Shown one piece after another: positions 5,613-43,810 of a stretch of DNA of 64,000 nt. Origin of the DNA: Macrostomum lignano (lineage: Eukaryota); assembly GCA_002269645.1 (NCBI GenBank), contig NIVC01001664.1, positions 62,001 to 126,000 on the forward strand. The letters are read 5' to 3'. How positions within the stretch are numbered: the first letter of the stretch is position 1; every line of letters starts with the position of its first letter. The translations under genes were made by a program, and so were the position numbers. The notes beneath the pieces were generated by a model that saw nothing but the letters and a program-made list of their open reading frames with translations, had not been told where the DNA came from and searched no databases.

Positions 5613-5654
5613 TTATTTTTAGAACTGTGGATTCCCCACTCTCTACCCTTACAG

Positions 5655-12120: not shown

Positions 12121-12176
12121 AAAACCTACCCTATAATGGCACTTTGACTTTGCAAGGTCCATCAAAACAGACGCAC

Positions 12177-16480: not shown

Positions 16481-16756
16481 CTACTTGCCTGGGAACGGCA
16501 AGTGGCGGTAGATCCTGTAGGCAGTGCGAACCACGCGGTACACCCGCCTCCACCTGATGCGGATGCGACGGAATCTGATGCGCCACTTCTTCTGCAGCTC
16601 AGCAGCCTTCTCGTCCGTCATCTCCGGCTCGTCCATGTCAGCCAGAGCCTCCAGAGCCGCCATCGACTCCGCGTCCTCCTCCGACATCTCCTGGCTGGGT
16701 CTGGCGACGGCCAGAGCTGCGCACAGCAGGAGTCCGAGAACGAACTGCCACCTCAT
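16481..16756 (-). CDS. Secreted cationic (antimicrobial-type, arminin-like) peptide precursor, copy A, intact, 91 aa
   Basis: Signal MRWQFVLGLLLCAALAVA, acidic propiece, KK, mature WRIRFRRIRIRWRRVYRVVRTAYRIYRHLPFP, then GK*. Confidence 0.9.
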   Translation of the reverse strand: MRWQFVLGLLLCAALAVARPSQEMSEEDAESMAALEALADMDEPEMTDEKAAELQKKWRIRFRRIRIRWRRVYRVVRTAYRIYRHLPFPGK

Positions 16757-16900
16757 GCTTGCTTGGTTGAGTTGTGTAGCCTGATGAAGCTGAGAAGCTG
16801 AGAGATATCTCGTTTGCTGTTGGTTTATTTTTGCTCTCTCAGGCGTCTCGTATTTATGCAGAGAAACTCGGCACGTTTTTCCGCAAGTTGTTCTTTTTCT
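16757..16900 (-). promoter_or_regulatory. Conserved proximal promoter/5' UTR block of the peptide genes (TATA-like CATAAATA about 95-100 nt upstream of ATG)
   Basis: Near-identical upstream of all 7 copies. Function is inferred. Confidence 0.6.
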
Positions 16901-17585
16901 GTTTTCGCAATGGCCTTCACGAGCGGCTGCTTTCTTTTAGACTCAGGTCAGGAACAATAAAATTGCTTTCATATCTTTGAACGCTGTTGCTATTATCATA
17001 ATTGGGCACTTCTCAAGAATAGAGTGGCATTGACCGCAGCTACTGTCACCCATTTTGGTATTGTATTTTTCTGCAAAGCTTCGCGGAATGCAAGCCGTGT
17101 TTACATAGCCAGAAATCTTGCCATGCCACATCAGATAGCAATTTGCTCTTATTGTGGCCCTGAGTTCGTCGGCACTGCAAGTTCAGATGAAATTGCACTG
17201 CATTATTGATGCTTACTGAGAAGAACTGCATGTAACTGCAATCTGATTCGATTCAATCTGCTTCGACTGGTTCTGCTCGGAAATTTCCTATCGAATTGAA
17301 TTCCTTTATGATTTGCTTATCGCTTTTGCAGTTCAGTTTCCAGTCTGAATTACGAACGGATCTCATAATCGTATTAACCTTGGTACGATATAATGCTCCT
17401 ATTTTATTGAGTTTTTTACCTGTACGAATGCAAGAGCTGAGGGCACCCTGACTCAATGCATTGTGGGAGACCACGGTCATCAGTTCCATGGAGCTGTCAC
17501 ACGATAAATACAAAGCCAAAGCATTGGCTTTCCAGCCTCAACAGGGTGATATGGTACATTGTCACTTCTGCAGCAGCTACCTAAG

Positions 17586-18622
17586 GGCAGCTAGGAAAGC
17601 AGCAGTCTGTGCCTGTCTGTGCCTGTCTGTGCCAGTCTGTGACAGTCTGTGCCAATCTGTGCCTGCCTGTGCCTGCCTGTGCCTGTCTGTGCCTGTCTGT
17701 GCCAGTTTGTGCCAGTCTGTGCCAGTGTGTGCCTGTCTGTGCCTGTCTGTGCTAGTCTGTGCCAGTCTGTGCCAGTGTGTGCCTGTCTGTGCCTGTCTGT
17801 GCCTGTCTGTGCCAGTCTCTGCCAGTCTGTGCCAATATGTGCCTGTATGTGCCTGTCTGTGCCTGTCTGTGCCAGTGTGTGCCAGTCTGTGCCAGTCTGT
17901 GCCTGTCTGTGCTTGTCTGTGCCTGTCTGTGCCTGTCTGTGCTTGTCTGTGCCAGTCTGTGCCAGTCTGTGCCAGTCTGTGCCAGTGTGTGCCTGTCTGT
18001 GCCTGTCTGTGCCTGTCTGTGCCTGTCTGTGCCAGTTTGTGCCAGTCTGTGCCAGTCTGTGCCAGTCTGTGCCAGTGTGTGCCTGTCTGTGCCTGTCTGT
18101 GCTAGTCTGTGCCTGTCTGTGCCAGTGTGTGCCTGTCTGTGCCTGTCTGTGCCTGTCTGTGCCTGTCTGTGCCTGTCTGTGCTTGTCTGTGCTTGTCTGT
18201 GCCAGTCTGTGCCAGTCTGTGCCAGTGTGTGCCTGTCTGTGCCTGTCTGCGCCAGTGTGTGCCTGTCTGTGCCAGTGTGTGCCTGTCTGTGCCTGTCTGT
18301 GCCTGTCTGTGCCTGTCTGTGCCAGTGTGTGCCTGTCTGTGCCTGTCTGTGCTAGTCTGTGCCAGTCTGTGCCAGTGTGTGCCTGTCTGTGCCAGTCTGT
18401 GCCTGTCTGTGCCTGTCTGTGCCTGTATGTGCCTGTCTGTGCCTGTCTGTGCCAGTCTGTGCCAGTGTGCGCCTGTCTGTGCCTGTCTGTGCTAGTCTGT
18501 GCCAGTCTGTGCCAGTGTGTGCCTGTCTGTGCCTGTCTGTGCTAGTCTGTGCTAGTCTGTGCCAGTCTGTGCCAGTGTGTGCCAGTATGTGCCTGTCTGT
18601 GCCGGTCTGTGCCAGTCTGTTC
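17586..18622. repeat. 10-bp minisatellite (tgtgcctgtc / tgtgccagtc)
   Basis: About 100 decamer units. Confidence 0.97.
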
Positions 18623-18649
18623 CAGTCCGAGAACGAACTGCCATCTCAT
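18623..18649 (-). pseudogene. Peptide gene stub B (MRWQFVLGL only) fused to the decamer array
   Basis: Full promoter plus the first 9 codons, then minisatellite. Confidence 0.85.
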
Positions 18650-19497
18650 GCTTGCTTGGTTGAGTTGTGTAGCCTGATGAAGCTGAGAAGCTGAGAGATA
18701 TCTCGTTTGCTGTTGGTTGAGTTCTGCTCTCTTAGGCGTCTCGCATTTATGCAGAGAAACTCGGCACGTTTTTCCGCAAGTTGTTCTTTTTCTGTTTTCG
18801 CAATGGCCTTCACGAGCGGCTGCTTTCTTTTAGACTCAGGTCAGGAACAATAAAATTGCTTTCATATCTTTGAACGCTGTTGCTATTATTATAATTGGGC
18901 ACTTCTCAAGAATAGAGTGGCATTGACCGCAGCTACTGTCACCCATTTTGGTATTGTATTTTTCTGCAAAGCTTCGCGGAATGCAAGCCGTGTTTACATA
19001 GCCAGAAATCTTGCCATGTCACATCAGATAGCAATTTGCTCTTATTGTGGCCCTGAGTTCGTCGGCACTGCAAGTTCAGATGAAATTGCACTGCATTATT
19101 GATGCTTACTGAGAAGAACTGCATGTAACTGCAATCTGATTCGATTCAATCTGCTTCGACTGGTTCTGCTCGGAAATTTCCTATCGAATTGAATTCCTTT
19201 ATGATTTGCTTATCGCTTTTGCAGTTCAGTTTCCAGTCTGAATTACGAACGGATCTCATAATCGTATTAACCTTGGTACGATATAATGCTCCTATTTTAT
19301 TGAGTTTTTTACCTGTACGAATGCAAGAGCTGAGGGCACCCTGACTCAATGCATTGTGGGAGACCACGGTCATCAGTTCCATGGAGCTGTCACACGATAA
19401 ATACAAAGCCAAAGCATTGGCTTTCCAGCCTCAACAGGGTGATATGGTACATTGTCACTTCTGCAGCAGCTACCTAAGGGCAGCTAGGAAAGCAGCA

Positions 19498-20265
19498 GTC
19501 TGTGCCTGTCTGTGCCTGTCTGTGCCAGTCTGTGACAGTCTGTGCCAATCTGTGCCTGCCTGTGCCTGTCTGTGCCTGTCTGTGCCAGTTTGTGCCAGTT
19601 TGTGCCAGTGTGTGCCTGTCTGTGCCTGTCTGTGCTAGTCTGTGCCAGTCTGTGCCAGTGTGTGCCTGTCTGTGCCTGTCTGTGCCTGTCTGTGCCAGTC
19701 TCTGCCAGTCTGTGCCAATATGTGCCTGTATGTGCCTGTCTGTGCCTGTCTGTGCCAGTGTGTGCCAGTCTGTGCCAGTCTGTGCCTGTCTGTGCCTGTC
19801 TGTGCCTGTCTGTGCCTGTCTGTGCTTGTCTGTGCTTGTCTGTGCCAGTCTGTGCCAGTCTGTGCCAGTGTGTGCCTGTCTGTGCCTGTCTGCGCCAGTG
19901 TGTGCCTGTCTGTGCCAGTGTGTGCCTGTCTGTGCCTGTCTGTGCCTGTCTGTGCCTGTCTGTGCCAGTGTGTGCCTGTCTGTGCCTGTCTGTGCTAGTC
20001 TGTGCCAGTCTGTGCCAGTGTGTGCCTGTCTGTGCCAGTCTGTGCCTGTCTGTGCCTGTCTGTGCCTGTCTGTGCCTGTCTGTGCCTGTCTGTGCCAGTC
20101 TGTGCCAGTGTGCGCCTGTCTGTGCCTGTCTGTGCTAGTCTGTGCCAGTCTGTGCCAGTGTGTGCCTGTCTGTGCCTGTCTGTGCTAGTCTGTGCTAGTC
20201 TGTGCCAGTCTGTGCCAGTGTGTGCCAGTATGTGCCTGTCTGTGCCGGTCTGTGCCAGTCTGTTC
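19498..20265. repeat. 10-bp minisatellite, second array
   Basis: Same decamer, shorter. Confidence 0.97.
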
Positions 20266-20292
20266 CAGTCCGAGAACGAACTGCCATCTCAT
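20266..20292 (-). pseudogene. Peptide gene stub C (MRWQFVLGL only)
   Basis: Same junction as stub B. Confidence 0.85.
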
Positions 20293-21460
20293 GCTTGCTT
20301 GGTTGAGTTGTGTAGCCTGATGAAGCTGAGAAGCTGAGAGATATCTCGTTTGCTGTTGGTTGAGTTCTGCTCTCTTAGGCGTCTCGCATTTATGCAGATA
20401 AACTCAGCACGTTTTTCCGCAAGTTGTTTTTTTCTGTTTTCTCAATGGCCTTCACGAGCGGCTGCTTTCTTTTGAGTCTTTAGGCCAAGTGCAATAAAAA
20501 ATTTTTACCGCTTTTTCAATTGTCACCGCTGGGCGCTTCTCAAGCATAGGGAGGGGGGCATTGACTACAGCTGCTGTTAGCCATCTTTCTTTGCATTGTC
20601 TTTCTCTGCACAGCCCTTCGCCCTGCCAAGGCCGCTTCGTGGAATACAAGCCGTGTTTACGTAGCCAGAAAACCTGCCACATACGATAGCAATGTGCTCC
20701 TTTTATGGCCCCGAGTTCGTTGGCACAGCAAGTTCAGATGAAATTGCATTGCAATTATACTTATACCCAGACGCAATAGCAAAATATTTTGGCCATGATT
20801 CCACACTTTTCAGGTTCTAGGCCATAGACAAAAGGATTTGACAGTAGAGGCTTCCTTGAAATAATATATATATTAATTGATATTGAACAAATGCAATGTT
20901 GAAAACGCCAAATTGCATGAAAAAATGATAATTATCTTAAGCAAAACTTTTGCAACACACTTCATCAGTTTGTATAGTCAACATTTTACAGCGAGTGTTT
21001 ACTTATCGCCCCGAAATAAAGCTGCAGTTCTCAAAGCGGCAGTTCCATCTGCTCATTGAAGCCACTCACTTCCGGCAGGTCCGGCAGTTCTTCAGTTCCA
21101 TGGTCGTTCTCAATCCAATCAATGAAATCCCGCAAGGCCTGGTCATCGTGGTGGTCCGTTGAACTGAGCTCAGACAGCAGTTGCAACTCGTCCATCTTGA
21201 CTCCGTTTAGCGAGTCCGCGGGAAGATGTTTCCAGTAATAAGCGCAGCCATAGTTGCCTTGTAGAGAGAGAGCTTGAATTTTTGAGAACCGCATAACATA
21301 ATCAAAGACTTTGAGGAAACTGTTTTGTCTATGGCCCATCTAATTATATGGTAGACCTCGTATAGCTCTCGTGTGTTTCGTCTATGGTAAACTAAATCGC
21401 AAAACAGCCAATAGCACCAGGGCCAAGAAGTGTTGAATAATGGCAGCGACAAGTGTTAAA

Positions 21461-24400
21461 TAATGGTAGGTTAATATGAAGCACAAATTCACGTTAATGG
21501 CCAAGGGTACGCGCACGAGTGGCAATTTGGCCATTAACTTGAATTTGTGCTTCGTATTAGCTGCATTGATTGAATTGTCTATGGGTGAAAAGGCAGGAAA
21601 GAAAATATCGATGCGTACACTTCATGTCAATGGCCAGTACCGCAGATAACATTGGTGAAGCAGTTGTCTATGGCCGAAATTGGAGGCAGAAATAATAATA
21701 ACGCAGAAAGAATACAGACTTTGGACAGAATTTTCCCCAGTTGCTCTACTGTAGCTATGTCCGTTATCAACTTAATCAATTGGGGCAATTTGCCCTGCGA
21801 CGAACTTGGCAACATAACGAGTTCGGAGTTGGACTTCGTTGCTGCTGCTTCTGCGAGCGAACGCCATGACGAAGAGTTCGCAGCTTTTTTGCAATTCATT
21901 CAAGAGCCACCTTCGGATACCAGCAGTTTGCCGTTGCTTGAAGAAGACACGGTTGATATATCGGAGATGGACAGAGTCGAAATCGACAGTTTGCCACAGG
22001 ACACAAGGAAACAAATGTACCAGTTTGGACAACGCTTCCAGGAGTTCATAAAGTCCGAGAAACTAAAAGATATTGAATTCACTACAAACGAAGCACTGAA
22101 TCAGTATCTACGTTATTTTTCTATTTCAAGCTAAAAAAGCAGGAAGGATCAGTCTACTCTCCAGCAACGCTTATATGCATTCGGGCCGGCATTCAACGTT
22201 TTCTGCGGATGGTTTTGAAACGATCGGTTGACATCATCAATGGTGAGGAATTCCGATCGAGCAACGAAATGCTGCGCGTAAAGGTGCGCGAATTCCATCG
22301 AGCTGGACTGACCACTAAACAGTACAAACCAATCGAGACTGGTGATATGCAAAAGCTTGCATGCTACTTTGAGGGAGGTACGGCAGTGGCAGAGCAGGAC
22401 AAATTTCTGTTTTGTCCTTTATTGCTTGAGCGAAAGAGGCCAAGAGCACCTGCAGCATCTGACACGACGAGATGCATTAGAGCTGCACACCGACTCTGAT
22501 GGTAAGGAGTTCTACTGTCTCCCGCCCCTTCCGTCTAAGAATAAGTCCGCGGATCCAGTGAGAAGTAAAGCAAAACCCGACAACAAGCAGGCAAGGATTT
22601 ACGATACTGAAAAGGTACGACGGTATCTAGACCTTCTACCAGTTGAAACCAAGGATGAAACCAAGTGAGGAGGGCAAGGTGGAGACCAAGAAAGACGGGA
22701 AGCGCGCCGCTCCCGGAGCTGGGGCTCAGGCTCCGCCGGCCAAGCGGCAGCAGCAACCCGATTCCGAGCCTAAGAAGGCTATTCGCGCTGCTGAGTCCGC
22801 CTCGCGCGGACGTAGACCCGCCCGCAGTAACCGGCGGTCCGGTCTAATCCAGCGCGCACTTGACGAAGCTCAGTCTCTGAGACTTCACCTCGAGCAGACT
22901 CGTGCCGCTCGCAAAAGCACTGAAAGCCAGCCGAGGGAACTGAACGACGGCATGGCTCAGCCTTCCAACTGGTGGGATTACCACCAGCAGGACGCTGCCG
23001 GCCGAGCTCAGACTCCCGACGGCGGGGCGCAAGGCGAAGGCAGCAGCCGTACCCCAGTCGCTGGGGAGGAGGGCGGTGTGGCGCGGCTAGGTGACTCACC
23101 TGCCGTGGGCGCCGTGTCCGTCTCCGCGGCGGCTGGGGAGGCGGCTGAGCCTGAGCCAATGGAAATTGGCGACTCAACTCTCACCGATGAGGCTGAGAAT
23201 GAGTTGCTTTTCTCCTCCCCTGGACAGTAGACATGACTGTCTCCCAGGGCATCCACTGCTTGCAGGTCAACCTGCAGCACAGCATTGCTGCTTCAGTCAA
23301 CCTCTTGAAGCACACTGACCAATACGCGCCAGGGATTATCCTTATCCAGGAACCTTGGACGCTAAGGGGCAGTCCCCAACATGTCCCCACCGGCTACCAG
23401 TGTTTAACCGCTGGCACCCCGGGAGGGAAACCTGGCACCAAGATCCTGCATCATGGTGTCCAATTCTATTAACGCATGGCTCAGATCGGACCTGTCCACC
23501 AGGGACATCTGCGTCATCCAATCTGAAGACATACTCCCTGGGAGGACTACCCTCATCGCCTCGGTTTACCTACCGGGCGACGGCGAGATGATCCCAGTAG
23601 AGCTTGTCACACTGGTCGAGCTCTGCTCCACCAGAAATTATGAGCTGCTTGTGGCAGGCGATATCAATGCCCACCACACCCACTGGGGCAGTTCTGATAT
23701 AAACCAGAGAGGTGAAGACTTCCTGGCTTATATTGCTACTACAACCCTTGAGTTCTGTAACTCGGGTAGTACCTCTACCTTCAATAACGGACGCCGATCG
23801 GAGGTGCTGGATGCCACCCTCGCCACGCCCAGGCTCTTCCAGAGCACTAGGGAGTGGCGAGTGCTTTCTGAGACGTCCCTCTCCGATCACAAGTTCATCT
23901 CTTTCACGCTGACCAGCGCCCGAAACGCAGGCCAGCTTTACTGGAAACGGAATGCTAGGAATACCGACTGGACCGCCTTCAGGCTTGCCCTGGAGGAGAC
24001 CTATCGTTGCACTAGCACTCCAGTCTCCATCAACACCTGCGAGGAAGCAGATGAATTTGCGGCCGCACTTACGGACTCGCTCACTGAGAACCCAGGAGAA
24101 ACACTGGAAGCGATGCTAACAGCGTTTTTTCCGAACGAGCCAGCCAGGCCCGACCCCCCTGATCACTCAGTGGGCGGACACGTACTGGCCGACTCAATCA
24201 TCACGGAGGACCGCGTTACTAAAGCAGTCTCCTCCTTCAAACCCTTCAAATCCCCAGGACCGGACGGCGTTGTGCCAGCCTTCCTACGGGAGGCGGTGAA
24301 ATGCACACTGGTTTTCTGCGGAACCTTTGCCGGCTTCTGAAAGCCTGCATTGTTCTCGGCTTTGTTCCGAAACCCTGGACCGAGGCCAAGGTGGTCTTTA

Positions 24401-27185
24401 TCCCCAAGCCCGGCCGACCGGACTACCGGTCCATTAAATCCTTCAGACCAATTAGCCTCACCTCCTCATTGGTGAAGCTGTTGGAGAGACTGGTGCTTTG
24501 GCGCCTCCTCTCTGTGGAACTAAAGAACAAGCCGCTCAGTGAGAACCAGCACGCCTTTCGGGTAGGCAGGTCCACGGAGAGCGCGCTTCACGTTTTGGTT
24601 GACATGCTGGAGAAAGCCGTTCTTGGTAATGGCTACGCTCTCGCTGTCTTCCTCGACATTGTTGGAGCCTTCGATAATGTCCTCTTTGAGGCTTTTGACA
24701 GAGCTCTACGTGCTAGAGGAACCCACTCGCACCTCACTCGGTGGATCATGTATATGATCAGCCACCGTACTGCCACCGCACACCTGTTGGGCCACCAACG
24801 GACGGTTACCGTCTGCAAAGGCAGCCCCCAGGGCGGTGTCCTCTCTCCAGTTCTCTGGAACATGGTCATCGATGAGCTCCTCCAGGACAGCCATCTTGAC
24901 CCCATCCTTAAGGTCGGTTACGCCGATGATGTCACAGCCGTGGCATCCGGACCGTCACCTGAAACCCTTAGGGATCTTCTGCAAAACTTTATTTACTCTG
25001 CTGAACGATGGGCGGACAGGTGCGGCCTCAGGCTCTCTGAGACCAAAACTGTCGCGATCATGTTCACCAGCAGGGTAAACTGGCGTATTCGCCCACTAAA
25101 GCTTTACGGGGTGGAAATTCCATCCTGCAAGCAAACCAAGTGTCTCGGCGTGACGCTGGACCATCGGCTGAGCTGGTCCACCCACGTCCAGGCCAAAACC
25201 AAAAAAGCCCTCGCGATTCTTGCGCAGCTGCGCAGAGCCGTCGGCACCACCTGGGGCCTCACCCCGAAACGGCTCTGGTGGATCTATACCGCAATGGTCC
25301 GACCGGCCGTTACTTACGCCCGCCTGGTCTGGACCAGCGCCTTGCAGATTAAAACCTGCCACGAAGCCCTCAAAAAGGTGCAGGGACGTGCATGCCGCAT
25401 GATCCTGAATGCCCCGCTCTCTGCTCCCTTTGACGGCCTCAACGCCTTTCTTTGCCTTCCGCCTCTGGACATCTTTGTCCGTCGCGAGGCTGCTAAAACG
25501 ACCCGCCGGCTCATCGAGGCTGGCGTTAGCTTCAAGCCACAAAGAGCGATGGCGAAGCGCAAGCTCCTGCCGCACTCTGACCTGTGCATTAAAGTTCTGG
25601 AGGAGAGTGGGAGTGCGGCTGTCCTGTCGGACGCTGAGCCGCGCTCCCTCAATCTCTACCAACGCTTCAAGGTCACTATCCCCTCCAGGGAGAACGCCAA
25701 CGACAGCTGGGCCCCTCAGGAGGTTCACTGCTTTACTGACGGATCCTCCAAAGACGGTTTATCCGGCTTTGGAGTCTGCATCCTTATCAACGGCCGCGTG
25801 ATTGCTACTCACGCCCAACACACTGGCAGACTCTCCAGCGTCTTCCAGAGTGAAGTCCTTGCTATCAGCTCCTGTGCAGCTGAACTCCACTGCAAGGACT
25901 TCAAGGACAGAAGAATCTTCTTCCACTCTGACAGCCAGGCCGCTTTACAGGCCCTGTGTCACACCACTACGAACTCCCGAACAGTCCGCGACTGTATCGG
26001 GCAGCTCAACAAGCTGGCTCGGAGGAACACCGTCCGGCTTACGTGGATCCCAGGACACGCCGGCTTTAAAGGTGAAGACGCCAAGCACTTCGTCTGCTAC
26101 TGCCCGGCCTTCAACCGAGACCGGCTCAACCACCTCGGGCCCAACCCGTCCCTGGACGACGTTTGCCGGCCCGAGAACATCCCACGGCTCATCCGGTTCC
26201 TCCGGGCCACCAAGCGAGCCTCCGTCTTCCTCACCGAAGACAACGCTGCAGACAGGACCGGCAGACCTCCCTGACCGGCCCGCGCCCTAGCCTATGCGGG
26301 TCTTTCAGGGATTAGCGGAATGGGCGACGCTCGCCTCCCCGCTGCGTCTTCGGACCGCCCTGCAGCTAAGTCAAAGTAAGTCAAGGATAACCATCTATTT
26401 CCACAAACTCTGCGAACGGAAGTCCTACGTATTCAACGAAGCAGAATCGCGGTGTCAACTATCTTGTTCGATTCATGCATAACTTGAGCGAGAAGGCTGG
26501 GCTATCAAAGATGTATTCCAACCATTGCACCAGGTAGTACGACTAATTTTTTTGATCTCGAAAATAACAGATTTTAGATCTTTAATTTATGAGAGAAACA
26601 TTGTAAACTACATGCATTAGTAATTTAACATCATTAATCATATTTTCTTAGGGTCACCAGGATTACGGATCTAGAGGCCGCGGGACATAGCATGGCCGAC
26701 ATTATGTCCATCACCGGCCAGACATCTGAACGAACGGCACGCAGGTACCTTACAAAACGTCGGGACCGATCTCTGCAAGCGAGCAGCTCTGCTGTGACAT
26801 TGGCATTGGCACTGCAAACTAAAGAAGAAGAAGTTAAAGTTGACCAGGCCGGACACGTAGGACCAAGCAATTCTGGGGCCAGTGAGCTTGATGTCAATGT
26901 GGTGTCAAACATGCAAATCACCGGCGTTAATCAGGAAAATCTGGCGACGGCGAAGTTTAGCTTTAACAACTGCACCTTCTCCGAATGCAAAATCGTTTGA
27001 TAAATAAGACAGCTAATGATATGAAGCTTAATACGACTTGATAGGAATTTACCATAAATAATTTAAAATAAATTGTTGCTTCGTTTGTCTGGTTTGCCCT
27101 TTACATTAAAATAGCTGTTTGTCTTACAGTTAATGATCGGTCATTAATCAGAGGACATTAACGTGAAGTGACATTTCGATCAATG
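21461..27185 (+). mobile_element. Crypton (tyrosine recombinase, DUF3504-type) DNA transposon, about 2.0 kb, degenerate, split by a LINE
   Basis: FYFKLKKQEGSVYSPATLICIRAGIQRFL, EFRSSNEML, ERGQEHLQHLT, LSEKAGLSKMYSNHCTR | intron 26534-26651 | ITDLEAAGHSMADIMSITGQTSERTARRYL, and FSFNNCTF. Several frameshifts. Subterminal palindromes at both ends. Confidence 0.82.
22657..26381 (+). mobile_element. Non-LTR retrotransposon, R1/LOA-like (APE-RT-RNase H), frameshifted and internally deleted
   Basis: ORF2 from ATG 23233: LQVNLQHS, IQEPW, GDINAHH, SDH; RT PQGGVLSP and YADD; RNase H FTDGS, SDSQAAL, WIPGH. 7-bp TSD caaggat (22650-22656 / 26382-26388). TAAGTCAAG-type tail. Confidence 0.93.
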
Positions 27186-27456
27186 CCACTCTATGCTTGA
27201 GAAGTGCCCAATTATAATAATTGCAACAGCGTTCAACAATATGAAAGCAATTTCATTGTTCCTGACCTGAGTCCAAAAGAGAGCAGCCGCTCGTGAAGGC
27301 CATTGCGAAAAAAGAAAAATAACAACTTGCGGAAAAACGTGCCGAGTTTATCTGCATAAATACGAGACGCCTGATAGAGCAGAACTCAACCAACAGCAAA
27401 CGAGATATCTCTCAGCTTCTCAGCTTCATCAGGCTACACAACTCAACAAAGCAAGC

Positions 27457-27728
27457 ATGAGATGGCAGTTCGTTCTCGGACTCCTGCTGTGCGCGCTCTG
27501 GCCGCCGCCAGACCCAGCCAGGAGATGTCGGAGGAGGACGCGGAGTCGATGGCGGCTCTGGAGGATCTGGCGGGCTTGGACAAGCCGGAAATGACCGAGG
27601 AGAAGGCCGCTGAGCTGGAGAAGAAGTGGCGCATGCGTCACCGCATCCACTTCAGGTGGAGGCGGGTGTACGGCGTGGTCCACAGGGTCTACAGGGGGTA
27701 CCGGCGCATCATCTGCGGAAAGCGCTGA
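27457..27728 (+). CDS. Cationic peptide precursor copy D (90 aa after restoring one G near 27495); frameshifted as assembled
   Basis: ATG 27457. gcgcg(g)ctctg lacks one G relative to paralogs. Mature WRMRHRIHFRWRRVYGVVHRVYRGYRRIIC, then GKR*. Confidence 0.8.
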
Positions 27729-28467: not shown

Positions 28468-29045
28468 CACACTCACTCACTCACCCACCCACTCACACAC
28501 TCACTCACTCACCCACCCACTCATTCACTCACTCACTCACTCACTCACTCACTCACTCACTCACTCACTCACTCACTCACTCACTCACTCACTCACTCAC
28601 TCACTCACTCACTCACTCACTCACTCACTCACTCACTCACTGCCAGGCACAGACAGGAAAAACAGGCACAGACAGGCACAGACTGGCATGTGGACTGGAA
28701 CAGACTAGCACACACTGGCAGAGACTGGCACAGACAGGCACAGACTGGCAGAGACTGGCACAGACTGGCACAGATTGGCACAGACTGGCAGAGACTGGCA
28801 CAGACTGGCACAGATTGGCACAGACTGGCACAGACTGGCACAGATTGGCACAGACTGGCACAGACTGGCACACACTGGCACACACTGACACAGATTGGCA
28901 CAGACTGGCACACACTGGCAGAGACTGGCACAGACTGGCACAGACTGGCACAAACTGGCACAGACTGGCACAGACAGGCACAGACAGGCACAGACTGGCA
29001 CAGACTGGCACAGACTGGCACAGACAGGCACAGACAGGCACAGAC
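28468..29045. repeat. (ACTC)n microsatellite followed by the reverse-complement decamer array
   Basis: Read directly; mirror of 31336-31810. Confidence 0.96.
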
Positions 29046-30593
29046 TGCTGCTTTGCTAGCTCCTCTTAGGTAGCTGCTGCAGAAGTGACAATGTACCATA
29101 TCACCCTGTTGAGGCTGGAAAGCCAATGCTTTGGCTTTGTATTTATCGTGTGACAGCTCCAGAGAACTGATGACCGTGGTCTCCCACAATGCATTGAGTC
29201 AGGGTGCCCTCAGCTCTTGCATTCGTACAGGTAAAAAACTCAATAAAATAGGAGCATTATATCGTACCAAGGTTAATACGATTATGAGATCCGTTCGTAA
29301 TTCAGACTGGAAACTGAACTGCAAAAGCTATAAGCAAATCATAAAGGAATTCAATTCGATAGGAAATTTCCGAGCAGAACCAGTCGAAGCAGATTGAATC
29401 GAATCAGATTGCAGTTCCATGCAGTTCTTCTCAGTAAGCATCAATAATGCAACTGCCATAGCGTCGAGGCCGGTAGGCTGAGACGCGGTAAGGCAGTTGT
29501 GTGTTAGGCGTGAACTCTCGATACACTGTAGTGGAATTGTGTCTAGTTTCGTCCAAAAACCAATTCAAAAAAGCTAGGACACAACTTCCCAGACGGGAAT
29601 TGTTCACTAAGCGATTCTAGGGATTTGTGTCATAGGCATTTTCCACTTGGCGCAAGCCAAATGATGGCCATAGACTAAACGTATGTGGCCATTTAACCTT
29701 CATTTAAATGTTAAATGAATTGCGGTCTTATAAGCTGGAACTCTGCAGCAGAGGGTACATGTTCCTGTTTCCTCCGTTTGCCCTAACCTCTATTCATGCC
29801 ACTCATACGAATGATAAATTGGTCGAATTTGCTGATTGAAAGCATTGACGGCTTGAATGGAAATGAGGTCAACTTTCTCAGCGACTTGAGTATGGGTGGA
29901 CGTGATGAGGCGGATGACAAAGAGTTGATGGAGTTCATCCGATTCATTGAATGCGGTACCGATGATGCTCTGCCAACACTGCCAAGCAAAGAAGAGGCTT
30001 GCCCTGAGGATTCCATGCGGAACAAGCCGTGCGATTCGGCCGATGTGAGTGTAATTATTGTCGATTATAGCTCTACTCATCGATTATTGCGGAACAATTG
30101 GTCTACGTTTCATTATGCCCACGTTACGGCCGTTTTCGTACATGTATACAATCTGTTTATTCGGCTTTATTGTATTGAATAAAAAATATCCTCGCAAACG
30201 CATTGATACAGGAATATACAGATTGCTTATCTGCAAATAGGTATATCCAAATATAACCCGTTGGGAATATCCAAAGATGGGGGCGGCTTGACCATAGACT
30301 ATTCGCAGATAAGCAATCTGTTGTATTCCTGTTTCGATGCCTGAAAGGCGCGCAAAAATTTACTTAGTTCACAATTTCCGTCGACGCAATCGTTTGTGGC
30401 CCAAACGAAACTAGACACAATCTACCATTGTGTGGTATGCAATTGAGTTGAATAATGGCCAAAACACGAGTGCGCGTAGCGCACGTATGTCTATGGCCAT
30501 TATTCAACGAAGTTACGAGTACATACCATACAAGTGCATTGTATTTATGCTTTTACCCCGGCACCATGTCGTTATTCCACACTTTTTGGCGGC

Positions 30594-31335: not shown

Positions 31336-31810
31336 GTCTGTGCCTGTCTGTGCCTGTCTGTGCCAGTCTGTGACAGTCTGTGCCAATCTGTGCCTGCCTG
31401 TGCCTGCCTGTGCCTGTCTGTGCCTGTCTGTGCCAGTTTGTGCCAGTCTGTGCCAGTGTGTGCCTGTCTGTGCCTGTCTGTGCTAGTCTGTGCCAGTCTG
31501 TGCCAGTGTGTGCCTGTCTGTGCCTGTCTGTGCCTGTCTGTGCCAGTCTCTGCCAGTCTGTGCCAATATGTGCCTGTATGTGCCTGTCTGTGCCTGTCTG
31601 TGCCAATCTGTTCCAGAGTGAGTGAGAGTGAGTGAGTGAGTGAGTGAGTGAGTGAGTGAGTGAGTGAGTGGGTCGGTGAGTGAGTGAGTGAGTGAGTGAG
31701 TGAGTGAGTGAGTGAGTGAGTGAGTGAGTGAGTGAGTGAGTGAGTGAGTGAATGAGTGGGTGGGTGAGTGAGTGAGTGTGTGAGTGGGTGGGTGAGTGAG
31801 TGAGTGTGTG
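31336..31810. repeat. Decamer array plus (GAGT)n microsatellite
   Basis: Read directly. Confidence 0.96.
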
Positions 31811-31993: not shown

Positions 31994-34943
31994 CAAGGAC
32001 TACTTAACAACTCAGGACGCTACACTCGCGAATGGTAGAAATTCTAGAAAAGGCCGCTTGCTTTAGCTGTGTCTATGGCAATGAAGCCTTTTCACTAACA
32101 TTCTTTCATATTCTCAATGCTGGTTCAGACCAGCACTGCTGGTTTGTAGCAATAATTTGTTTCGTCTAAAATCTTGATAAATAGCAACACTCTTTTTCAT
32201 CAAAATGCCAATGAAGTGCTGCATCCCTGGATGCAGAAGCAATTATAAGAGCGGTGAAAAATGCACTGTTTTTGGCTTTCCAAAGGAATAAGCTGAAGCT
32301 GAGGCATGGCTCCATGCGTTGCCTGTGCAAATTAAGGTAATTTATGTAGCCTTTTGAACCTAATTTTTCGTTTTTACTATAAAGATACTTATATTAACTG
32401 AATTGTGATGATCATTCCATTCTATCTGTAGAAGGCTAGCATCTACATGGGAGTCTGCAAAAATCACTGGCCTGAAAATGCACCAATGAGACGAATTAAC
32501 CGCCATACACGCCCCATCGACCCACCCTCAATCTTTAAAGATTTTTCATTGACTTCCCTGCGTCAGACTGTCTCAAGTAAGTATGAATGGTTGTGTACTT
32601 AGTTTACTTACTAAGTTGTATCAGCCTGTTTCAAATATTTTAGGACGCTCTAGAGATGCTGGTCGGCGAGGCGTGCTGTTAGTCGACAGAGCTAGGGCCC
32701 CTGATGAATTGACTGCCTTCAATTCTGTCGACAGAATTGTCTCGTGGGCACTATTCATTACGTCAGCTTTGAGCCTGGATTTTGTTACCTCCGGAGGCTG
32801 GATTGTTCAATGTCAGGATTTGCGAGTCGATTTTTTGCTCATTCATGAGCGCACTGTTGAGTCTTCCGTTCGAGTTAAGAGCGACTTCACAGTCTTGGCG
32901 TATCGGCGCGATGTGCTTGTAAAAATTTCTGACATATTAGGTTTTCAGCACAGGCTGCAGCGCTACAGTCAGCTGGAAGCAATTGCCAACAGGACGCGGA
33001 GCTATGAAATCTCTGCAAGCTCTGCAGCTCAGTCACACATAGATGCGCTTCAGTCGATCTGTCTGGAATCATCTGATCCACGTCAGCAATATCTTCTACG
33101 CCAATTTCAGCTAAGCTTTAAACCACCCGGTGGCGCTCGGTACAACTGCATGGATATTTTGATGGCGGCTAAGATATATTTTGCTGGAAGACAAGCGTAC
33201 CGAGCTGCGAGAGAACTAGCGTGTCTGCCTCATCCAGCTACTCTAAAACGGCACATCGGCGGACTCGGTTCAGTTGGTACAGATAAAGATTGTCAGCTTA
33301 TTATTGAAGCTCATTTAAAGTGCTGCAGCCCGTTGCAGCGTATCTGCTCTATTGTCTTCGACGAAGTTTACGTGCAGCCTTCCTTACGTCTTCGTGGAGG
33401 CCACGTTATTGGATATGCAGAGGATGCACCACAAAATTTGGCAAGAACTATTCTAGCTATGATGGTTAAGCCATTTATGGGAGCTTCTGCTTTTGTCGCT
33501 CGACTCATTTCTATATACAGTCTACGACCAGAATTTTTGTACGAGCAAATCGTGCGGCTGTTAGAAATTTTGCATGGCCTCGGTGGAACAGCCATAGCCA
33601 TAATCTGCGACAATCATTTCACTAATCAAAGATGTTTCCGAAGATTTCAGCGGGAGAGTGACTCACAACCATGGAAGGCAGTGAATCCAGTAAACAAGAA
33701 TAAACCTTTGTTTCTACTATACGACAGTGTTCATTTGATGAAGAATATTCGCAACAACTGGTACACCCAATCGCACAGACAACTTGAGTTCCAGTCAATA
33801 TCAGACAGTGGAGTAACTAGTATAGCTAGATGGAATGATATTATTGAAATTGAGGAGCGATCGCGTGGTCACGTAGTTCGACCAACTACGCTCAGTCCGG
33901 TGTCTTGCCACCCGTCACCATTGGAACGACAGAAAGTTTCACTAGTGCTTGATGTGTTCAATGATAAAACGGTTGCTGCTCTTCGTTTGAATAGTCGTCT
34001 TGAAACAGCGGATTTCGTTGAAAGTGTACTAAAATTCTGGAAAATCGTAAACTGCAAGTCGCCATCTGCATACGTCCTACTTAATGACAAATATAGAGAG
34101 CCAATTAAGTTAAACGAGTGCGAAAATTTGACATTTCTACTCCAATTTGCTACTCTGATTAAAGGGATGTCAGGCGGCCGAGGAGCGGGACGATTGCGTT
34201 CACTGACGACAGAGACGCGAAACGCATTGTACCAAACTGTAAGAGGCCTTGTAGATTTAAGTAGCCATCTCATACAATATTACGGCTTTTCTTACGTGCT
34301 ACTTGGTGAGTTTGATAATAATTAACAACTGCTAGATGAATATGCACACCGTTGTTTTTTATGAAAATCGACAGTGCTTGTACTAAACCACTTCTGGGCA
34401 GCGTTGTGTTAACAGTTCCGTGCTTGTATTTGAGAAAATCTTCGAAATTTTTTTTGATGTTCAACTGGACCGAGATCTGCTGCGTGGAGTGTCTCGAAGA
34501 CTAGCCAACTCCATCTATAAAGGCATGGTGCGCAGAGATTCCGAGACGTCCAGACAATCAACCACCGTTTGCTCTCGCCGACTCCGCAAACTGAAGCCTA
34601 GCTGAATGTTTCTTTCAAACACCTGTATATTTTCAAACTTTGTTATAGCCATCTATGTTTTCCTTATACAGTTATGTACGGAGTTTTCCGGTTCGTTGCA
34701 TATCGTACTTTTCAATTGTCATTTACAATTCTTATGCTGGGAATATTTGCATATATTTATTGTTTGTATAACTGTAAAAATAATTATTATAGCGCAAAAC
34801 TTTTATAATTATCTATCACTTAGTACTTGCTTCTTTATCCAAAAGGCTTATTAAAAAACCATAGACACAGCTAAAGCAAGCGGCCTTTTCTAGAATTTCT
34901 ACCATTCGCGAGTGTAGCGTCCTGAGTTGTTAAGTAGTCCTTG
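31994..34943 (+). mobile_element. P-superfamily DNA transposon (THAP + transposase), 2950 bp, 85-bp perfect TIRs, 8-bp TSD GCAACCTG
   Basis: TIRs 31994-32078 / 34859-34943 start CAAGG. TSD at 31986-31993 / 34944-34951. Spliced THAP exons 32205-32336 (MPMKCCIPGC..FP..W, with in-frame TAA at 32289) and 32432-32576 (VCKNHW..PPSIF). Exon 32644-34305 has FDEVY, ICDN, DSVHLMKNIRNN and ERQKV. Confidence 0.95.
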
Positions 34944-35183: not shown

Positions 35184-35471
35184 TCAGCGCTTTCCGCAGA
35201 TGATGCGCCGGTACTTCCTGTAGGCCCTGTAGACCCTGCGAGCCACGCGGTACACCCGCCTCCACCTGATGCGGATGCGACGGAGCCTCACGCGCCACTT
35301 CTTCTCCAGCTCAGCGGCCTTCTCCTCAGTCATTTCCGGCTCGTCCAAGCCCGCCAGATCCTCCAGCGCAGCCATCGACTCCGCGTCCTCCTCCGACATC
35401 TCCTTGCTGCTGGGCCTGGCGACGGCCAGAGCCGCGCACAGCAGGAGTCCGAGAACGAACTGCCACCTCAT
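35184..35471 (-). CDS. Cationic peptide precursor copy E, intact, 95 aa
   Basis: Same prepro region. Mature WRVRLRRIRIRWRRVYRVARRVYRAYRKYRRIIC, then GKR*. Confidence 0.9.
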   Translation of the reverse strand: MRWQFVLGLLLCAALAVARPSSKEMSEEDAESMAALEDLAGLDEPEMTEEKAAELEKKWRVRLRRIRIRWRRVYRVARRVYRAYRKYRRIICGKR

Positions 35472-35760
35472 GCTTGCTTAGTTGAGTTGTGTAGCCTGAT
35501 GAAGCTGAGAAGCTGAGAGATATCTCGTTTGCTGTTGGTTGAGTTCTGCTCTCTCAGGCGTCTCGTATTTATGCAGAGAAACTCGGCACGTTTTTCCGCA
35601 CTGAGCGCATAAACAACAATGCAATGAATAACACATTACATTGTTATTGGCAACCGGATTCTGAAGCAAATACTAAATTATTTTCATCAATGGCATTTGC
35701 TTTTATTCTGTGTGTGCATAGCTCTGATTCGCTGTTGACTGCTGCTGATCTTCGGCCAGT

Positions 35761-36572: not shown

Positions 36573-36803
36573 AGTAAACAGGCTAGGCAGTAAACAGCTA
36601 AAAATAGAAGCAAATACCACAGATGAAATGTAATTGCCAATAACAATGTGTTATTCATTGTTTATGCGCTCAGTGCGAAAGAAACGTGCCGAGTTTCTCT
36701 GCATGAATACGAGACGCCTGAGAGAGCAGAACTCAACCAACAGCAAACGAGATATCTCTCAGCTTCTCAGCTTCATCAGGCTACACAACTCAACCAAGAA
36801 AGT

Positions 36804-37057
36804 TTGAGGTGGCAGTTCGTTCTCGGACTCCTGCTGTGCGCGGCTCTGGTCGTCGCCAGACCCAGCTAGGAGATGTCGGAGGAGGACGCGGAGTCGATGG
36901 CGGCTCTGGAGGCTCTGGCCGACATGGACGAGCCGGAGGTGACGGACGAGAAGGCCGCTGAGCTGCAGAGAAGTGGCGCCGCATCAGGTGGAAGAGGATG
37001 TACCGCGCGGTTCTAACCACCAAAAAGATCTACCGCCGCCTGCCGTTTGGAAAGTAG
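36804..37057 (+). pseudogene. Cationic peptide pseudogene copy F
   Basis: ATG->TTG, CAG->TAG at 36867, and a 1-nt deletion in the KK codons. Reconstructed mature WRRIRWKRMYRAVLTTKKIYRRLPF, then GK*. Confidence 0.9.
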
Positions 37058-37494: not shown

Positions 37495-38255
37495 CCATAG
37501 ACAACTGGGGTGTATCTTAGTTTGACCATAGACAACCCGGGGTGTGTCTTAGTTTGACCATAGAAAACCCGGGGTGTGTCTTAGTTTGACCATAGACAAC
37601 TGGGGTGTGTCTTAGTTTGACCATAGACAACTGGAGTGTGTCTTAGTTTGACCATAGACAACTGGGGTGTATCTTAGTTTGACCATAGACAACCCGGGGT
37701 CTGTCTTAGTTTGACCATAGAAAACCCGGGGTGTGTCTTAGTTTGACCATAGACAACTGGAGTGTGTCTTAGTTTGACCATAGACAACTAGGTGTGTCTT
37801 AGTTTGATCATAGACAACTGGGGTGTGTCTTAGTTTGACCATAAACAACTGGGGTGTGTCTTAGTTTGACCATAGACAACTGGGGTGTGTCTTAGTTTGA
37901 CCATAGACAACTGGGGTGTGTCTTAGTTTGACCATAGACAACTGGGGTGTGTCTTAGTTTGACCATAGACAACTGGGGTGTGTCTTAGTTTGACCATAGA
38001 CAACTGGAGTGTGTCTTAGTTTGACCATAGACAACTGGGGTGTGTCTTAGTTTGACCATAGACAACCCGGGGTGTGTCTTAGTTTGACCATAGACAATTG
38101 GGGTGTGTCTTAGTTTGACCATAGACAACCCGGGGTGTGTCTTAGTTTGACCATAGACAACCCGGGGTGTGTCTTAGTTTGACCATAGACAACTGGGGTG
38201 TGTCTTAGTTTGACCATAGACAACTGGGGTGTGTCTTAGTTTGACCATAGACAAC
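37495..38255. repeat. 31-bp minisatellite (catagacaactggggtgtgtcttagtttgac)
   Basis: Units at 37871, 37902 and so on. Confidence 0.96.
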
Positions 38256-38299
38256 ACTGTGATGAGACAAAGCTTGCATCCTGCAAGAAATCAGAAAAG

Positions 38300-40856: not shown

Positions 40857-41935
40857 ATCAGAGACCGGAGGAGACTGGATATCAGAGACAGGAGGAGACT
40901 GGATATCAGAGACAGGAGGAGACTGGATATCAGAGACAGGAGGAGACTGGATATCAGAGACAGGAGGAGACTGGATATCAGAGACAGGAGGAGACTGGAT
41001 ATCAGAGACAGGAGGAGACTGGATATCAGAGACAGGAGGAGACTGGATATCAGAGACAGGAGGAGACTGGATATCAGAGACAGGAGGAGACTGGATATCA
41101 GAGACAAGAGATTGGATATCAGAGGCAGGAGGAGACTGGATATCAGTGACAGGAGACTGGATATCAGTGACCGGAGACTGGATATCAGTGACCGGAGACT
41201 GGATATCAGAGACAGGAGACTGGACATCAGAAACAGTAGACTGGATATCAGAGACAGGAGACTGGATATCAGAGGCAGGAGACTGGATATCAGTGGCAGG
41301 AGACTGGATATCAGAGGCAGGAGACTGGATATCAGAGGCAGGAGACTGGATATCAGAGGCAGGAGACTGGATATCAGTGACAGGAGACTGGATATCAGAG
41401 ACAGGAGACTGGATATCAGAGGCAGGAGACTGGATATCAGTGGAAGGAGACTGGATATCAGTGACAGGAGACTGGATATCAGAGACAGGAGACTGGATAT
41501 CAGTGACAGGAGACTGGATATCAGAGACAGGAGACTGGATATCAGAGGCAGGAGACTGGATATCAGTGGCAGGAGACTGGATATCAGAGACAGGAGACTG
41601 GATATCAGAGACAGGAGACTGGATATCAGTGACAGGAGACTGGATATCAGAGACAGGAGACTGGATATCAGAGACAGGAGACTGGAAATCAGAGGCAGGA
41701 GACTGGATATCAGAGACAGGAGACTGGATATCAGAGACAGGAGACTGGATATCAGAGGCAGGAGACTGGATATCAGTGACAGGAGACTGGATCTCAGAGG
41801 CAGAAGACTGGATATCAGTGACAGGAGACTGAATATCAGTGACAGGAGACTGGATATCAGTGGCAGGAGACTGGATATCAGAGACAGGAGACTGGATATC
41901 AGTGGCAGGAGACTGGATATCAGTGACAGGAGACT
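40857..41935. repeat. Minisatellite with 24-bp units (about 10 copies) switching to 21-bp units (gagacaggagactggatatca)
   Basis: Read directly. One more unit lies at 43112-43133, after the LINE. Confidence 0.96.
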
Positions 41936-43111
41936 GTCCCGCATAGCGACCTGTGCCTCAACTTTCTCAACGAGTGTCAGGCCAATCGCGTCTTCACCGA
42001 TGGCATTGCCTCAACGCTCAACCTGAGACAGCGCTACTCCGTAGCTATCGATTCGCGCGATAACATCAATGACCAATGGAACCTTGGTGAGCTTCATTGC
42101 TACACCGACGGTTCTAAGCAGTCAGCCAACACCGGCTTTGGTGTTGGAATCTTTCTGAACGGGAGGGTCATCGCTTCCCACGCTCAATACACTGGGGTCA
42201 ACTCCAGTGTTTTCCAAAATGAAGTTCTGGCCATCAGCTCCTGCACTGCAGAGCTTCTCGCCACTGGCGTTATTGGCAAGAACATCATTTTCCATTCGGA
42301 CAGCCAAGCTGCCTTGCACGCCATCAGTGGCTGCAGCACCAACTCTGCTACAGTCCTCGACTGTATCAAACTTCTCAACGTGTTGGGTTCCGCCAACAAA
42401 ATTACCCTTAAGTGGGTTCCGGGGCATGTGGGGATCCGAGGAAATGAGCTGGCTGACACCCTTGCAAAAGTTGGTGCCTCCGGCTCCTCTCTCGGCCCCG
42501 AACCTCTTGTCCCGATTCCTGGCTGTGTCATCGACTCGCGCATCAAAGCGTGGATCAGGACTCAGCACCGCTCGACTTGGGCGAACCGCACGAACTGCAG
42601 GCAATCCAGAGGCGCTGTCCCTCTGCCCTCTCACCAGCTCCGGAAGCTCCTCTTGCGCCTCTCGCGCAGAGACATCCGGGCTGCCACCATGACCCTCTCT
42701 GGTCACGGCTGCTTCTCCAGGCACCAGTACCTGCAGGGCAACGCCACCAACGCCACCTGTAGTTTCTGCAACTCAGGTGACGAAACCGCTGAGCATTTCG
42801 TCAGCATCTGTCCCGCCTTCACGCGGGCCAGACTCACTTACCTCGGGCCACACACATCTATTACTGAAGCGTGCAAACCCGAAAACTTTAATCAGCTCAT
42901 GCGCTACCTTCGGGCCACCCGCAGGGCTGAACTCTCCTTTCCAGAGAGCACCATAGCTGCTGGCGACACTGAGGGACCTCCCTGGGCGGCGCCAACCCTC
43001 CGTCCATAGCGACGCGTCGGACGTTCAGGGATTAGCGGAATGGGCGCCCGCGCCTTCCCGCTGTGTCCCCTCCGGGACAGCCCTGCAGCTAAGTCAAGTA
43101 AGTCAAGTAAG
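41936..43111 (+). mobile_element. 5'-truncated R1/LOA-like LINE (RNase H + C-terminal zinc finger) inserted in the minisatellite
   Basis: Open frame from 41936: YTDGS, NEVLAI, SDSQAAL, WVPGHVGIRGNELAD, CSFC..ETAEHFV..CP. Tail ctaagtcaagtaagtcaagtaag matches the copy at 22.6-26.4 kb. Confidence 0.92.
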
Positions 43112-43543
43112 GCAGGAGACTGGATATCAGTGAGGCAAGATCGGGCACATCGCACGCGCATGCAGAAAAGTGCATGCACACTGTTTACTCGTATAGTATC
43201 GAAGGCTAAATAATTTGATGCCAGTTCACGTATCTACTCATTATCTGCATGTAACCACTTTGGTGAATATTTCAAGCAAAAGAAGACAGGAGTATCAAGT
43301 GTGATGAGTGAATCCATTTTTCCGTATTATATTTATTCAAAAAATTAAATTAAAACATAATGGAAGAAGTACGTATCATTGGAGGGCGAAAAGGATATTT
43401 TGGGTCGCCGCGAAACCTACCATGGAACTCTCTTGCTTGGCATGAAAATACGCTACACGAGCGTCAGCAAATCAAGGCGACTGAGTGATGGGCGGAGTCC
43501 GATCCGTGTCCGAAGTCGGTCGGTGCAGCGGAGCACTGGTGGC

Positions 43544-43810
43544 CTACTTGCCAAGCGGCATGTGGCGGTAGATCCTGTAGACGAGACGAAGCACCTTCCT
43601 CCACCTGATGCGGACGCGGCGACGCCTCCCGAGCCACTTCTTCTGCAGCTCAGCGGTCTTCTCGTCTGTCACTTCCGGCTCGTCCATGTCGGCCAGAGCC
43701 TCCAGAGCCGCCATCGACTCCGCGTCCTCCTCCGACATCTCCTTGCTGCTGGGTCTGGCGACGGCCAGAGCTGCGCACAGCAGGAGTCCGAGAACGAACT
43801 GCCACCTCAT
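43544..43810 (-). CDS. Cationic peptide precursor copy G, intact, 88 aa
   Basis: Same prepro region. Mature WLGRRRRVRIRWRKVLRLVYRIYRHMPL, then GK*. Confidence 0.9.
   Translation of the reverse strand: MRWQFVLGLLLCAALAVARPSSKEMSEEDAESMAALEALADMDEPEVTDEKTAELQKKWLGRRRRVRIRWRKVLRLVYRIYRHMPLGK

Follow-up and report, generated by a model that had tools for sequence, protein, structure and literature searches.

The window analyzed here is a 64-kb stretch (64,000 nucleotides) of the genome of Macrostomum lignano, a free-living flatworm (contig NIVC01001664.1 of assembly GCA_002269645.1, positions 62,001 to 126,000 of the forward strand). Between its positions 16,481 and 43,810 it contains a cluster of short genes encoding secreted precursors with an acidic propiece and an Arg-rich C-terminal tail. 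Comparison of the window with itself by blastn and tblastn, together with translation of the five loci that an initial annotation had listed as full-length, recovered homologous copies at all seven places named there, namely loci A, D, E, F and G and two stubs. The copies share 82 to 92% DNA identity (blastn within the window), and the homologous unit extends from about 130 nt 5' of the ATG to about 100 nt 3' of the stop codon.

Three of the copies are intact. Locus A (16481-16756, minus strand) is a single-exon coding sequence (CDS) of 91 aa, an uninterrupted ATG-to-stop open reading frame (ORF) whose tail is WRIRFRRIRIRWRRVYRVVRTAYRIYRHLPFP followed by GK. Locus E (35184-35471, minus strand) encodes 95 aa, with the tail WRVRLRRIRIRWRRVYRVARRVYRAYRKYRRIIC followed by GKR (net charge +16), and locus G (43544-43810, minus strand) encodes 88 aa, with the tail WLGRRRRVRIRWRKVLRLVYRIYRHMPL followed by GK. 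Every indel that separates the intact copies in the nucleotide alignment is a multiple of three. Locus D (27331-27728, plus strand; CDS 27457-27728; P0003) has an intact promoter and a damaged CDS: one nucleotide is missing after codon 13, which puts the reading out of frame and leads to an early stop, and the remaining frame is open through GKR to the stop codon. Locus D may be a pseudogene of very recent origin, or the missing nucleotide may be an indel of the assembly. Locus F (36677-37057, plus strand; CDS 36804-37057), which lies head-to-head with E, reads as a multiply damaged pseudogene: its ATG has become TTG, codon 22 has changed from CAG to TAG, deletions of 1 nt and 18 nt interrupt the frame, and its TATA box is mutated to CATGAAT. 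The claim of five full-length loci and two stubs thus holds for homology at all seven places, and for integrity only at A, E and G.

All copies in the window, the stubs and pseudogene F included, carry the same promoter module, which consists of GGAAAAACGTGCC, a spacer of 10 to 11 nt and the TATA box CATAAAT, and which lies 101 to 102 nt 5' of the ATG. At locus A it occupies 16852-16882 (minus strand, 102 nt 5' of the ATG); nucleotide alignment places it at 35567-35597 for E and at 43905-43935 for G, both on the minus strand. The elements GGAAA(A/C)ACGTGCC and (C/T)ATAAAT are also found 5' of most divergent subfamily members on other contigs, and the module recurs 5' of a family gene in run SRR31628392, on a separate genomic contig of 929 nt; it is partial or weak at two loci (L006 and L011). 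The module resembles a core promoter common to the family, with a single ACGT-core regulatory site, and points to co-regulation of the genes. An identification of GGAAA...ACGTG as a kappaB-like immune enhancer was rejected because the consensus is not matched; the element is better called an ACGT-core site of the bZIP/bHLH type. The pattern of copies is far beyond chance, because 82 to 92% DNA identity is combined with in-frame indels and with a promoter module at a fixed distance from each copy.

Stub 1 (18624-18775, minus strand) consists of the promoter module, the TATA box, the 5' untranslated region (5' UTR) and the first 26 nt of the CDS (18624-18649), where the sequence switches abruptly to a 10-bp satellite. 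Stub 2 (20267-20418, minus strand; CDS part 20267-20292) is built in the same way. Both belong to a tandem duplication of about 1.9 kb, in which 16731-18387 and 18624-20270 are 96% identical. The satellite array, with the unit GTCTGTGCCT, stands in place of the remaining stub 1 CDS at 17605-18620 and has a sister array at 19498-20263. Two of the satellite arrays begin precisely where truncated family copies break off, at nt 26, and the promoters of these copies are intact. Further arrays of GTCTGTGCCT or its complement lie at 28646-29047 and 31336-31616, and satellite-bearing segments are duplicated in both direct and inverted orientation (for example, 17199-17957 and 28693-29451).

The encoded precursors begin with an 18-residue signal, MRWQFVLGLLLCAALAVA, after which the next residue is R. 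The signal has a basic n-region and a hydrophobic core of 13 residues, and its positions -3 to -1 are A-V-A. It is followed by a propiece of about 40 residues, rich in Asp and Glu and ending in KK, with a net charge of -8 to -9 in A, E and G; across the window subfamily the propiece ranges from -6 to -9 and the tail from +6 to +16. The tails of A, E and G are 28 to 34 residues long, contain 10 to 15 Arg, 2 Trp, 2 to 4 Tyr and no Asp or Glu, and end in GK or GKR; tails in the window hold 0 or 1 Cys. The same properties had been ascribed to the mature peptide of D, to which they apply only after frame repair. KK is invariant in the window subfamily and the junction is K, KK or KKK family-wide; cleavage at this junction is predicted. 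The C-terminal Gly followed by basic residues (GK or GKR) is a candidate amide donor in A, D, E and G. This arrangement, in which a signal and an anionic propiece lead up to KK and to a polycationic tail with a Gly-basic motif at its C-terminus, had been described correctly, and it is kept throughout the wider family, 24 of whose 27 members end in G, GK or GKR.

The two halves of the tail differ in their periodicity. Basic and hydrophobic residues alternate in the N-terminal half (RIRIRW core), which has a high beta-type hydrophobic moment; Arg recurs every three to four residues in the C-terminal half, where the alpha-type hydrophobic moment is about 1.0. AlphaFold, supplied with a shallow family alignment, predicts a single long helix over residues 49-92 with moderate confidence (predicted local distance difference test, pLDDT, 83-87 over residues 51-80; mean 71). 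In the tails of the window copies and close paralogues, internal RR and RK pairs are followed by Ile or Val, and once by Tyr, residues that are disfavored at P1' of convertase sites. A protamine-like sperm nuclear basic protein was also considered; the Arg-rich tail would fit, but such nuclear proteins are made in the cytosol and lack an ER signal peptide, and the candidate was rejected in view of the cleavable signal peptide and the amidation signal.

When 1.84 billion representative proteins were searched with the family profile, and again in another indexed search, the matches were M. lignano proteins only, apart from the contig of run SRR31628392 and one 603-aa low-complexity protein (E = 5e-4), which was dismissed as a chance match. 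The proposed flatworm origin is confirmed, and the family has so far been seen only in M. lignano and on that contig. At least 27 distinct members exist. All of them have an acidic propiece after a signal of the form M[RK]WQ..LGLLLC.., and their tails range from 6 to 37 residues. The shortest tails have 6 to 7 residues (FIHIHF, GFHVHFH), others are alternating forms of 8 to 10 residues (FVRVRVRL, IFRVRVRI, WLRVRARVRI), and there are also a Pro/Arg repeat, (PRVRL)n, and a 37-residue Arg/His/Tyr form. Other contigs hold pairs or small clusters; the cluster in the window is the largest seen and belongs to the long Arg/Trp subfamily.

Tandem or divergent pairs of other subfamilies on contigs of assembly Mlig_3_7 include those of L005 (7191-7385 and 10001-10195) and L009 (5725-5895 and 10001-10243). 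Homeologous contigs bear identical copies, which is consistent with the hidden polyploidy of the M. lignano genome. The member on Logan contig SRR31628392_42504 (380-813; L004) has the Pro/Arg-repeat tail FLRVRLPRVRMPRVRLPRVRLPRLRVRFRWSKK, lacks a Gly amidation signal and has the promoter module.

A Pfam search with three precursors, which included the amphibian antimicrobial peptide (AMP) precursor families, found no family at E<=0.1 except for one spurious 13-bit match. In a sequence search of the PDB, the family profile matched no chain at E<=10, and the tail alone gave one chance match (E = 0.8). Judged by these searches, the family is a new one of a functional kind already known, with no detectable homology to known AMP sequence families in Pfam or the PDB, such as dermaseptin/brevinin precursors, cathelicidins, defensins and cecropins.

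Nei-Gojobori estimates pooled over six copies put the ratio of nonsynonymous to synonymous substitution rates (dN/dS) at 0.15 in the signal, 0.31 in the propiece and 0.86 in the tail, and dN is about fourfold higher in the tail (0.39) than in the propiece (0.09). The signal and propiece are under purifying selection and the mature part is highly variable; diversifying selection on the tail is plausible from these estimates. Synonymous divergence itself climbs from 5' to 3' (dS of 0.10 in the signal, 0.30 in the propiece and 0.45 in the tail), a rise that suggests gene conversion or a nucleotide-level constraint on the 5' part. The pseudogene, the truncated copies and the inverted and tandem duplications are signs of birth-and-death evolution. 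The conserved prepro region, the hypervariable tail and the clustering with pseudogenes fit what is seen in effector-peptide families.

The GenBank annotation of Mlig_3_7 was built from RNA-seq-based transcript assemblies; annotated family members are therefore transcribed. For locus G, transcription is indicated by a published in situ probe. Brand et al. 2020 (PMC7336406) enter a probe for transcript RNA815_1838.3 (501 nt) in their Table S11 with the pattern "gonads", citing Ramm et al. 2019, and map it to Mlig001477.g4. The primers match the window at 43811-43834 (minus strand) and 43471-43491 (plus strand) with 0 mismatches, and the resulting amplicon around locus G (43471-43834, minus strand) is 364 bp, equal to the published length; locus G is thus transcribed. 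Positional RNA-seq data for the same transcript (Arbore et al. 2015; PMC4490696), which are unreplicated and share reads between paralogues, give 93.2 reads in head-only fragments (log2 level -11.5), 93.8 in head plus testis (-11.6), 48.8 in head plus testis plus ovary (-12.6) and 176.1 in the whole worm (-11.0). This shows that expression also occurs where gonads are absent.

ORFs of this length had been expected to be missed by standard annotation. That is the case for E and G, which are unannotated and absent from public protein sets, and none of A, E and G has an exact sequence match in a collection of 15 billion proteins; locus A and many paralogues, in contrast, are already "hypothetical proteins" in GenBank. 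Locus A is part of BOX15_Mlig001477g4 (PAA65325.1; P0001; 139 aa) in Mlig_3_7, a chimera in which 31 codons of an E/G-type copy are joined to the 5' UTR of A (16757-16807) read in frame. The junction has no GT/AG boundaries, and the chimera is probably a transcript-assembly artifact among near-identical paralogues.

Some members have also been flagged computationally before. Irvine et al. 2023 (PMC10414684; PLoS Pathog 19:e1011508) applied SignalP 4.1, ProP 1.0 and 11 AMP predictors to helminth proteomes, Mlig_3_7 included. Their supplement S5 gives BOX15_Mlig001477g4 a signal peptide ("Y"), three cleavage sites and the fragment VVRTAYRIYRHLPFPGK, AMP-like in 81.8% of the 11 predictors, and lists the paralogues BOX15_Mlig024774g1/g2, with the tails FRWRKAIRIAGKVAKAVL and FRWRKAIRVAGKVAKAVL, as AMP-like in 100% of predictors. 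The entries were labeled "Ungrouped" or "Same genome" and dropped, the pipeline having removed peptides that lacked homologues or were limited to a single genome; the members were not recognized as one family, and E and G do not appear in the list because they are unannotated. Compared with the AMP-like peptides (fAMP-LPs) of that study, the locus A model and BOX15_Mlig024774g1/g2 are similar in being listed there as SignalP-positive, AMP-like fragments, and they differ in having been dropped and in having a tail that ProP cut differently.

The initial annotation called the system undescribed, which is only partly right and overstated: locus A is annotated in GenBank, it and a paralogue had been listed as AMP-like, and the AMP idea is thus not wholly new. 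It had also proposed SignalP and ProP as checks; in the published pipeline the locus A model and the paralogues are SignalP-positive, and ProP sets a cut after RVYR inside the tail. Overall, its description was largely right and its immune interpretation reasonable but unproven, and the novelty was overstated. A full-text literature search for the gene IDs, transcript ID and peptide strings found no main-text mention. The supplements of Grudniewska 2018, Mouton 2018 and a 2021 Mol Biol Evol paper on the evolution of reproduction-related genes in Macrostomum (PMC8662610) contain no family entries, and a second set of family IDs had no match in the Brand 2020 supplement.

The genes are real, transcribed, single-exon members of a multigene family that works as a secretory cassette. 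Their products may be processed, amidated polycationic effector peptides of the host-defense or cytolytic type, a reading that we favor tentatively and with somewhat less than even confidence. The family resembles effector families more than receptor-matched neuropeptides because a conserved cassette is combined with a hypervariable polycationic tail, copy-number turnover and charge balancing by the propiece. From this layout we infer the following sequence of events. The shared TATA promoter and the upstream GGAAA(A/C)ACGTGCC element would drive a transcript of about 0.5 kb, the 18-residue signal peptide would carry the product into the endoplasmic reticulum, and the propiece (about 40 residues, net -8 to -9) would neutralize and chaperone the tail (+10 to +16). 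A convertase would then cut after KK, a carboxypeptidase would trim the terminal K or KR, and peptidylglycine alpha-amidating monooxygenase (PAM) would convert the exposed Gly to a C-terminal amide. The released peptide of 28 to 34 residues, rich in Arg, Trp and Tyr, would have a strictly alternating basic/hydrophobic N-terminal half and a C-terminal half with amphipathic-helix periodicity. It would most likely bind and disrupt anionic surfaces such as microbial membranes, and its deployment would possibly be in or around the germline and eggs.

Several observations weigh against host defense. The single in situ record is "gonads", rather than epidermis, gut or gland, and RNA815_1838.3 falls in positional class 0,0,0, that is, its levels are equal in head-only and larger fragments in data that are unreplicated and multi-mapped. 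KK followed by W or F is an unfavored context for convertases. ProP places three cleavage sites in the locus A model, and the scored fragment begins after RVYR within the tail; the real products of locus A may be shorter than the full tail. Positive selection on the tail was considered and not claimed, as the pooled dN/dS of 0.86 is below 1 and the single pairs above 1 rest on too few sites. Many members have tails of 6 to 10 residues with an amidation signal, which are typical of signaling peptides, and the family has no homology to any Pfam family or PDB chain in the searches described above. A germline or egg-protective deployment could possibly reconcile host defense with the "gonads" record.

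The short tails with an amidation signal raise the alternative that the cassette is a prohormone and that its amidated tail would address a receptor, not membranes, as a neuropeptide, hormone or pheromone-like peptide does. Signal, acidic spacer, di- or tribasic site and C-terminal Gly form the canonical prohormone layout, many of the 6- to 10-residue tails would be released as predicted amides such as IFRVHVRF-amide, FVRVRVRL-amide and GFHVHFH-amide (one with an RF-amide end), and the transcript is found in the head-only fragment, which includes the brain. Amidated regulatory peptides are, however, expected to be conserved among paralogues and orthologues, and the tails differ in length and sequence even between close paralogues (6 to 37 aa; in the window subfamily, dN and dS are nearly the same), which is hard to square with receptor co-evolution. 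Charges of +10 to +16 are atypical of neuropeptides, dozens of copies and pseudogenes are present, expression is undiluted from head-only to whole-worm samples, and the in situ entry records gonads. A signaling role is unlikely, and the short relatives with amidation signals are the main argument for it.

The gonad record, which comes from a study of socially sensitive gene expression, speaks for a second alternative, in which these are reproduction-related secreted peptides with no antimicrobial role (for example, components of the gamete or egg coat, or peptides that mediate sexual conflict). Macrostomum reproductive genes typically diverge fast and are lineage-restricted, a theme of PMC7336406. 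However, the positional RNA-seq level is the same in gonad-free fragments, the probe would cross-hybridize with all paralogues at 82 to 92% identity, and the amidation and polycationic amphipathic design would be left unexplained; we consider a purely reproductive role rather improbable.

It is also conceivable, at a still lower probability, that the peptides form materials, with alternating tails that self-assemble into beta-sheets or, mixed with polyanions, coacervate in mucus, rhabdites, the egg shell or adhesive secretions. Such assembly would make sense of the strict (X-R)n or (X-H)n alternation in short members, the RIRIRW core of the window copies and the high beta-type hydrophobic moment of the N-terminal half, and an abundance of Arg, Tyr and Trp favors cation-pi cohesion. 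Very short, amidated products of low mass are nevertheless unusual in structural secretions, enrichment in the tail region of the worm, where adhesive or cement glands would be expected to contribute, is below threshold (D-C = 1.6 log2, class 0), and no precedent was found in the M. lignano adhesion literature.

Finally, two of the five full-length copies are broken, two more are truncated and all lie among satellites and transposons, as would be expected if the ORFs were decaying relics in a repeat-rich region, but this explanation is effectively refuted by the three intact ORFs with only in-frame indels, the purifying selection on the prepro region, the conserved promoter, the existence of transcripts and the retention of one layout in at least 27 distinct members.

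The surroundings of the cluster combine mobile elements, tandem repeats and host genes. A non-LTR (long terminal repeat) retrotransposon at 23453-26274 (plus strand) has ORFs for an endonuclease, a reverse transcriptase and an RNase H (Pfam Exo_endo_phos_2, RVT_1 and RNase_H), and a second RNase H-containing fragment is located at 42314-43009 (plus strand), just downstream of locus G. Between a satellite block and locus E, a 580-aa ORF at 32583-34325 (plus strand) has a TNP-like RNase H N-terminal domain and resembles P-element/THAP9-type transposases. Two more tandem arrays lie at 37495-38255 (31-bp period) and 40869-41936 (21-bp period); the latter yields long spurious ORFs in several frames. 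The cluster is flanked by ordinary host genes, namely a DUF938 protein (1089-1847, plus strand), exons of a replication factor C subunit 3-like gene (3568-6149, plus strand) and cadherin-repeat exons (9334-13417, minus strand). The segments 49560-50444 and 51640-52524 carry identical low-complexity ORF sets 2080 bp apart, which points to a tandem duplication of recent date; this part of the window is strongly GC-skewed and AT-richer.

Host-defense peptides of flatworms are barely known; the 2023 helminth screen (PMC10414684) named one cestode peptide as the first AMP from cestodes. The family in the window could be knocked down as a whole, given a single conserved prepro region and a single promoter element, in a species for which transgenesis, RNA interference and in situ methods are available, and the promoter module could be used to drive expression in a cell-type-specific way. 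In addition, the family offers a clean case of a conserved cassette and a hypervariable payload evolving in a recently polyploid genome. The payoff is moderate, as the architecture is a textbook one, a computational screen had flagged members before and the function is so far a proposal.

Among known systems, flatworm neuropeptide prohormones of the FLP, NPF and npp groups have a signal peptide, an acidic spacer, a basic cleavage site and a Gly amidation donor, and some members of the present family would likewise end in RF-amide, RL-amide or RI-amide. They differ from these prohormones in having tails that are unconserved between paralogues, an extreme charge, one C-terminal peptide per precursor and dozens of copies. 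Indolicidin, tritrpticin and the designed peptides (RW)n and (IRIK)2-NH2 are linear Arg/Trp-rich AMPs of 6 to 13 residues that are cathelicidin-derived or synthetic. The window tails are similar to them in their content of Arg and aromatic residues, in the alternation of the RIRIRW core and in the predicted C-terminal amide, but they are longer, at 28 to 34 residues, and have a second, helix-like half.

At the level of the whole precursor, the closest parallels are found in frogs and in Hydra. In the dermaseptin superfamily of frog skin, a conserved signal and an acidic propiece with a dibasic end precede a hypervariable, often Gly-amidated C-terminal peptide; the genes occur in multiple copies, and conservation of their prepro region extends to synonymous sites. 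The window family shares this cassette design, with a dS of 0.10 in the signal against 0.45 in the tail. It has no sequence homology to the superfamily, its junction in the window is KK and not KR, its tails are far more Arg-rich, and it comes from a flatworm and is known from genes and transcripts, not from a defensive gland. The arminins and periculins of Hydra are secreted precursors restricted to their lineage, anionic in the N-terminal part and strongly cationic in the C-terminal part, a layout and a restriction that the window precursors share; arminin is not defined by a Gly amidation signal, and periculin is Cys-rich, unlike the window tails with their 0 to 1 Cys, and neither is homologous to them. 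Periculin is expressed in the germline and serves to protect embryos; by this precedent, the "gonads" record could be compatible with host defense. The most far-reaching synthesis is a speculative one. In it, one secretory cassette would have diversified into dozens of amidated peptides, from alternating (hydrophobic-Arg/His)n units of 6 to 8 residues to polycations of 28 to 37 residues. The long Arg/Trp forms would be the first experimentally tractable AMP family known from a free-living flatworm; the germline might supply them for the protection of gametes or embryos, by convergence with the dermaseptin superfamily and periculin.

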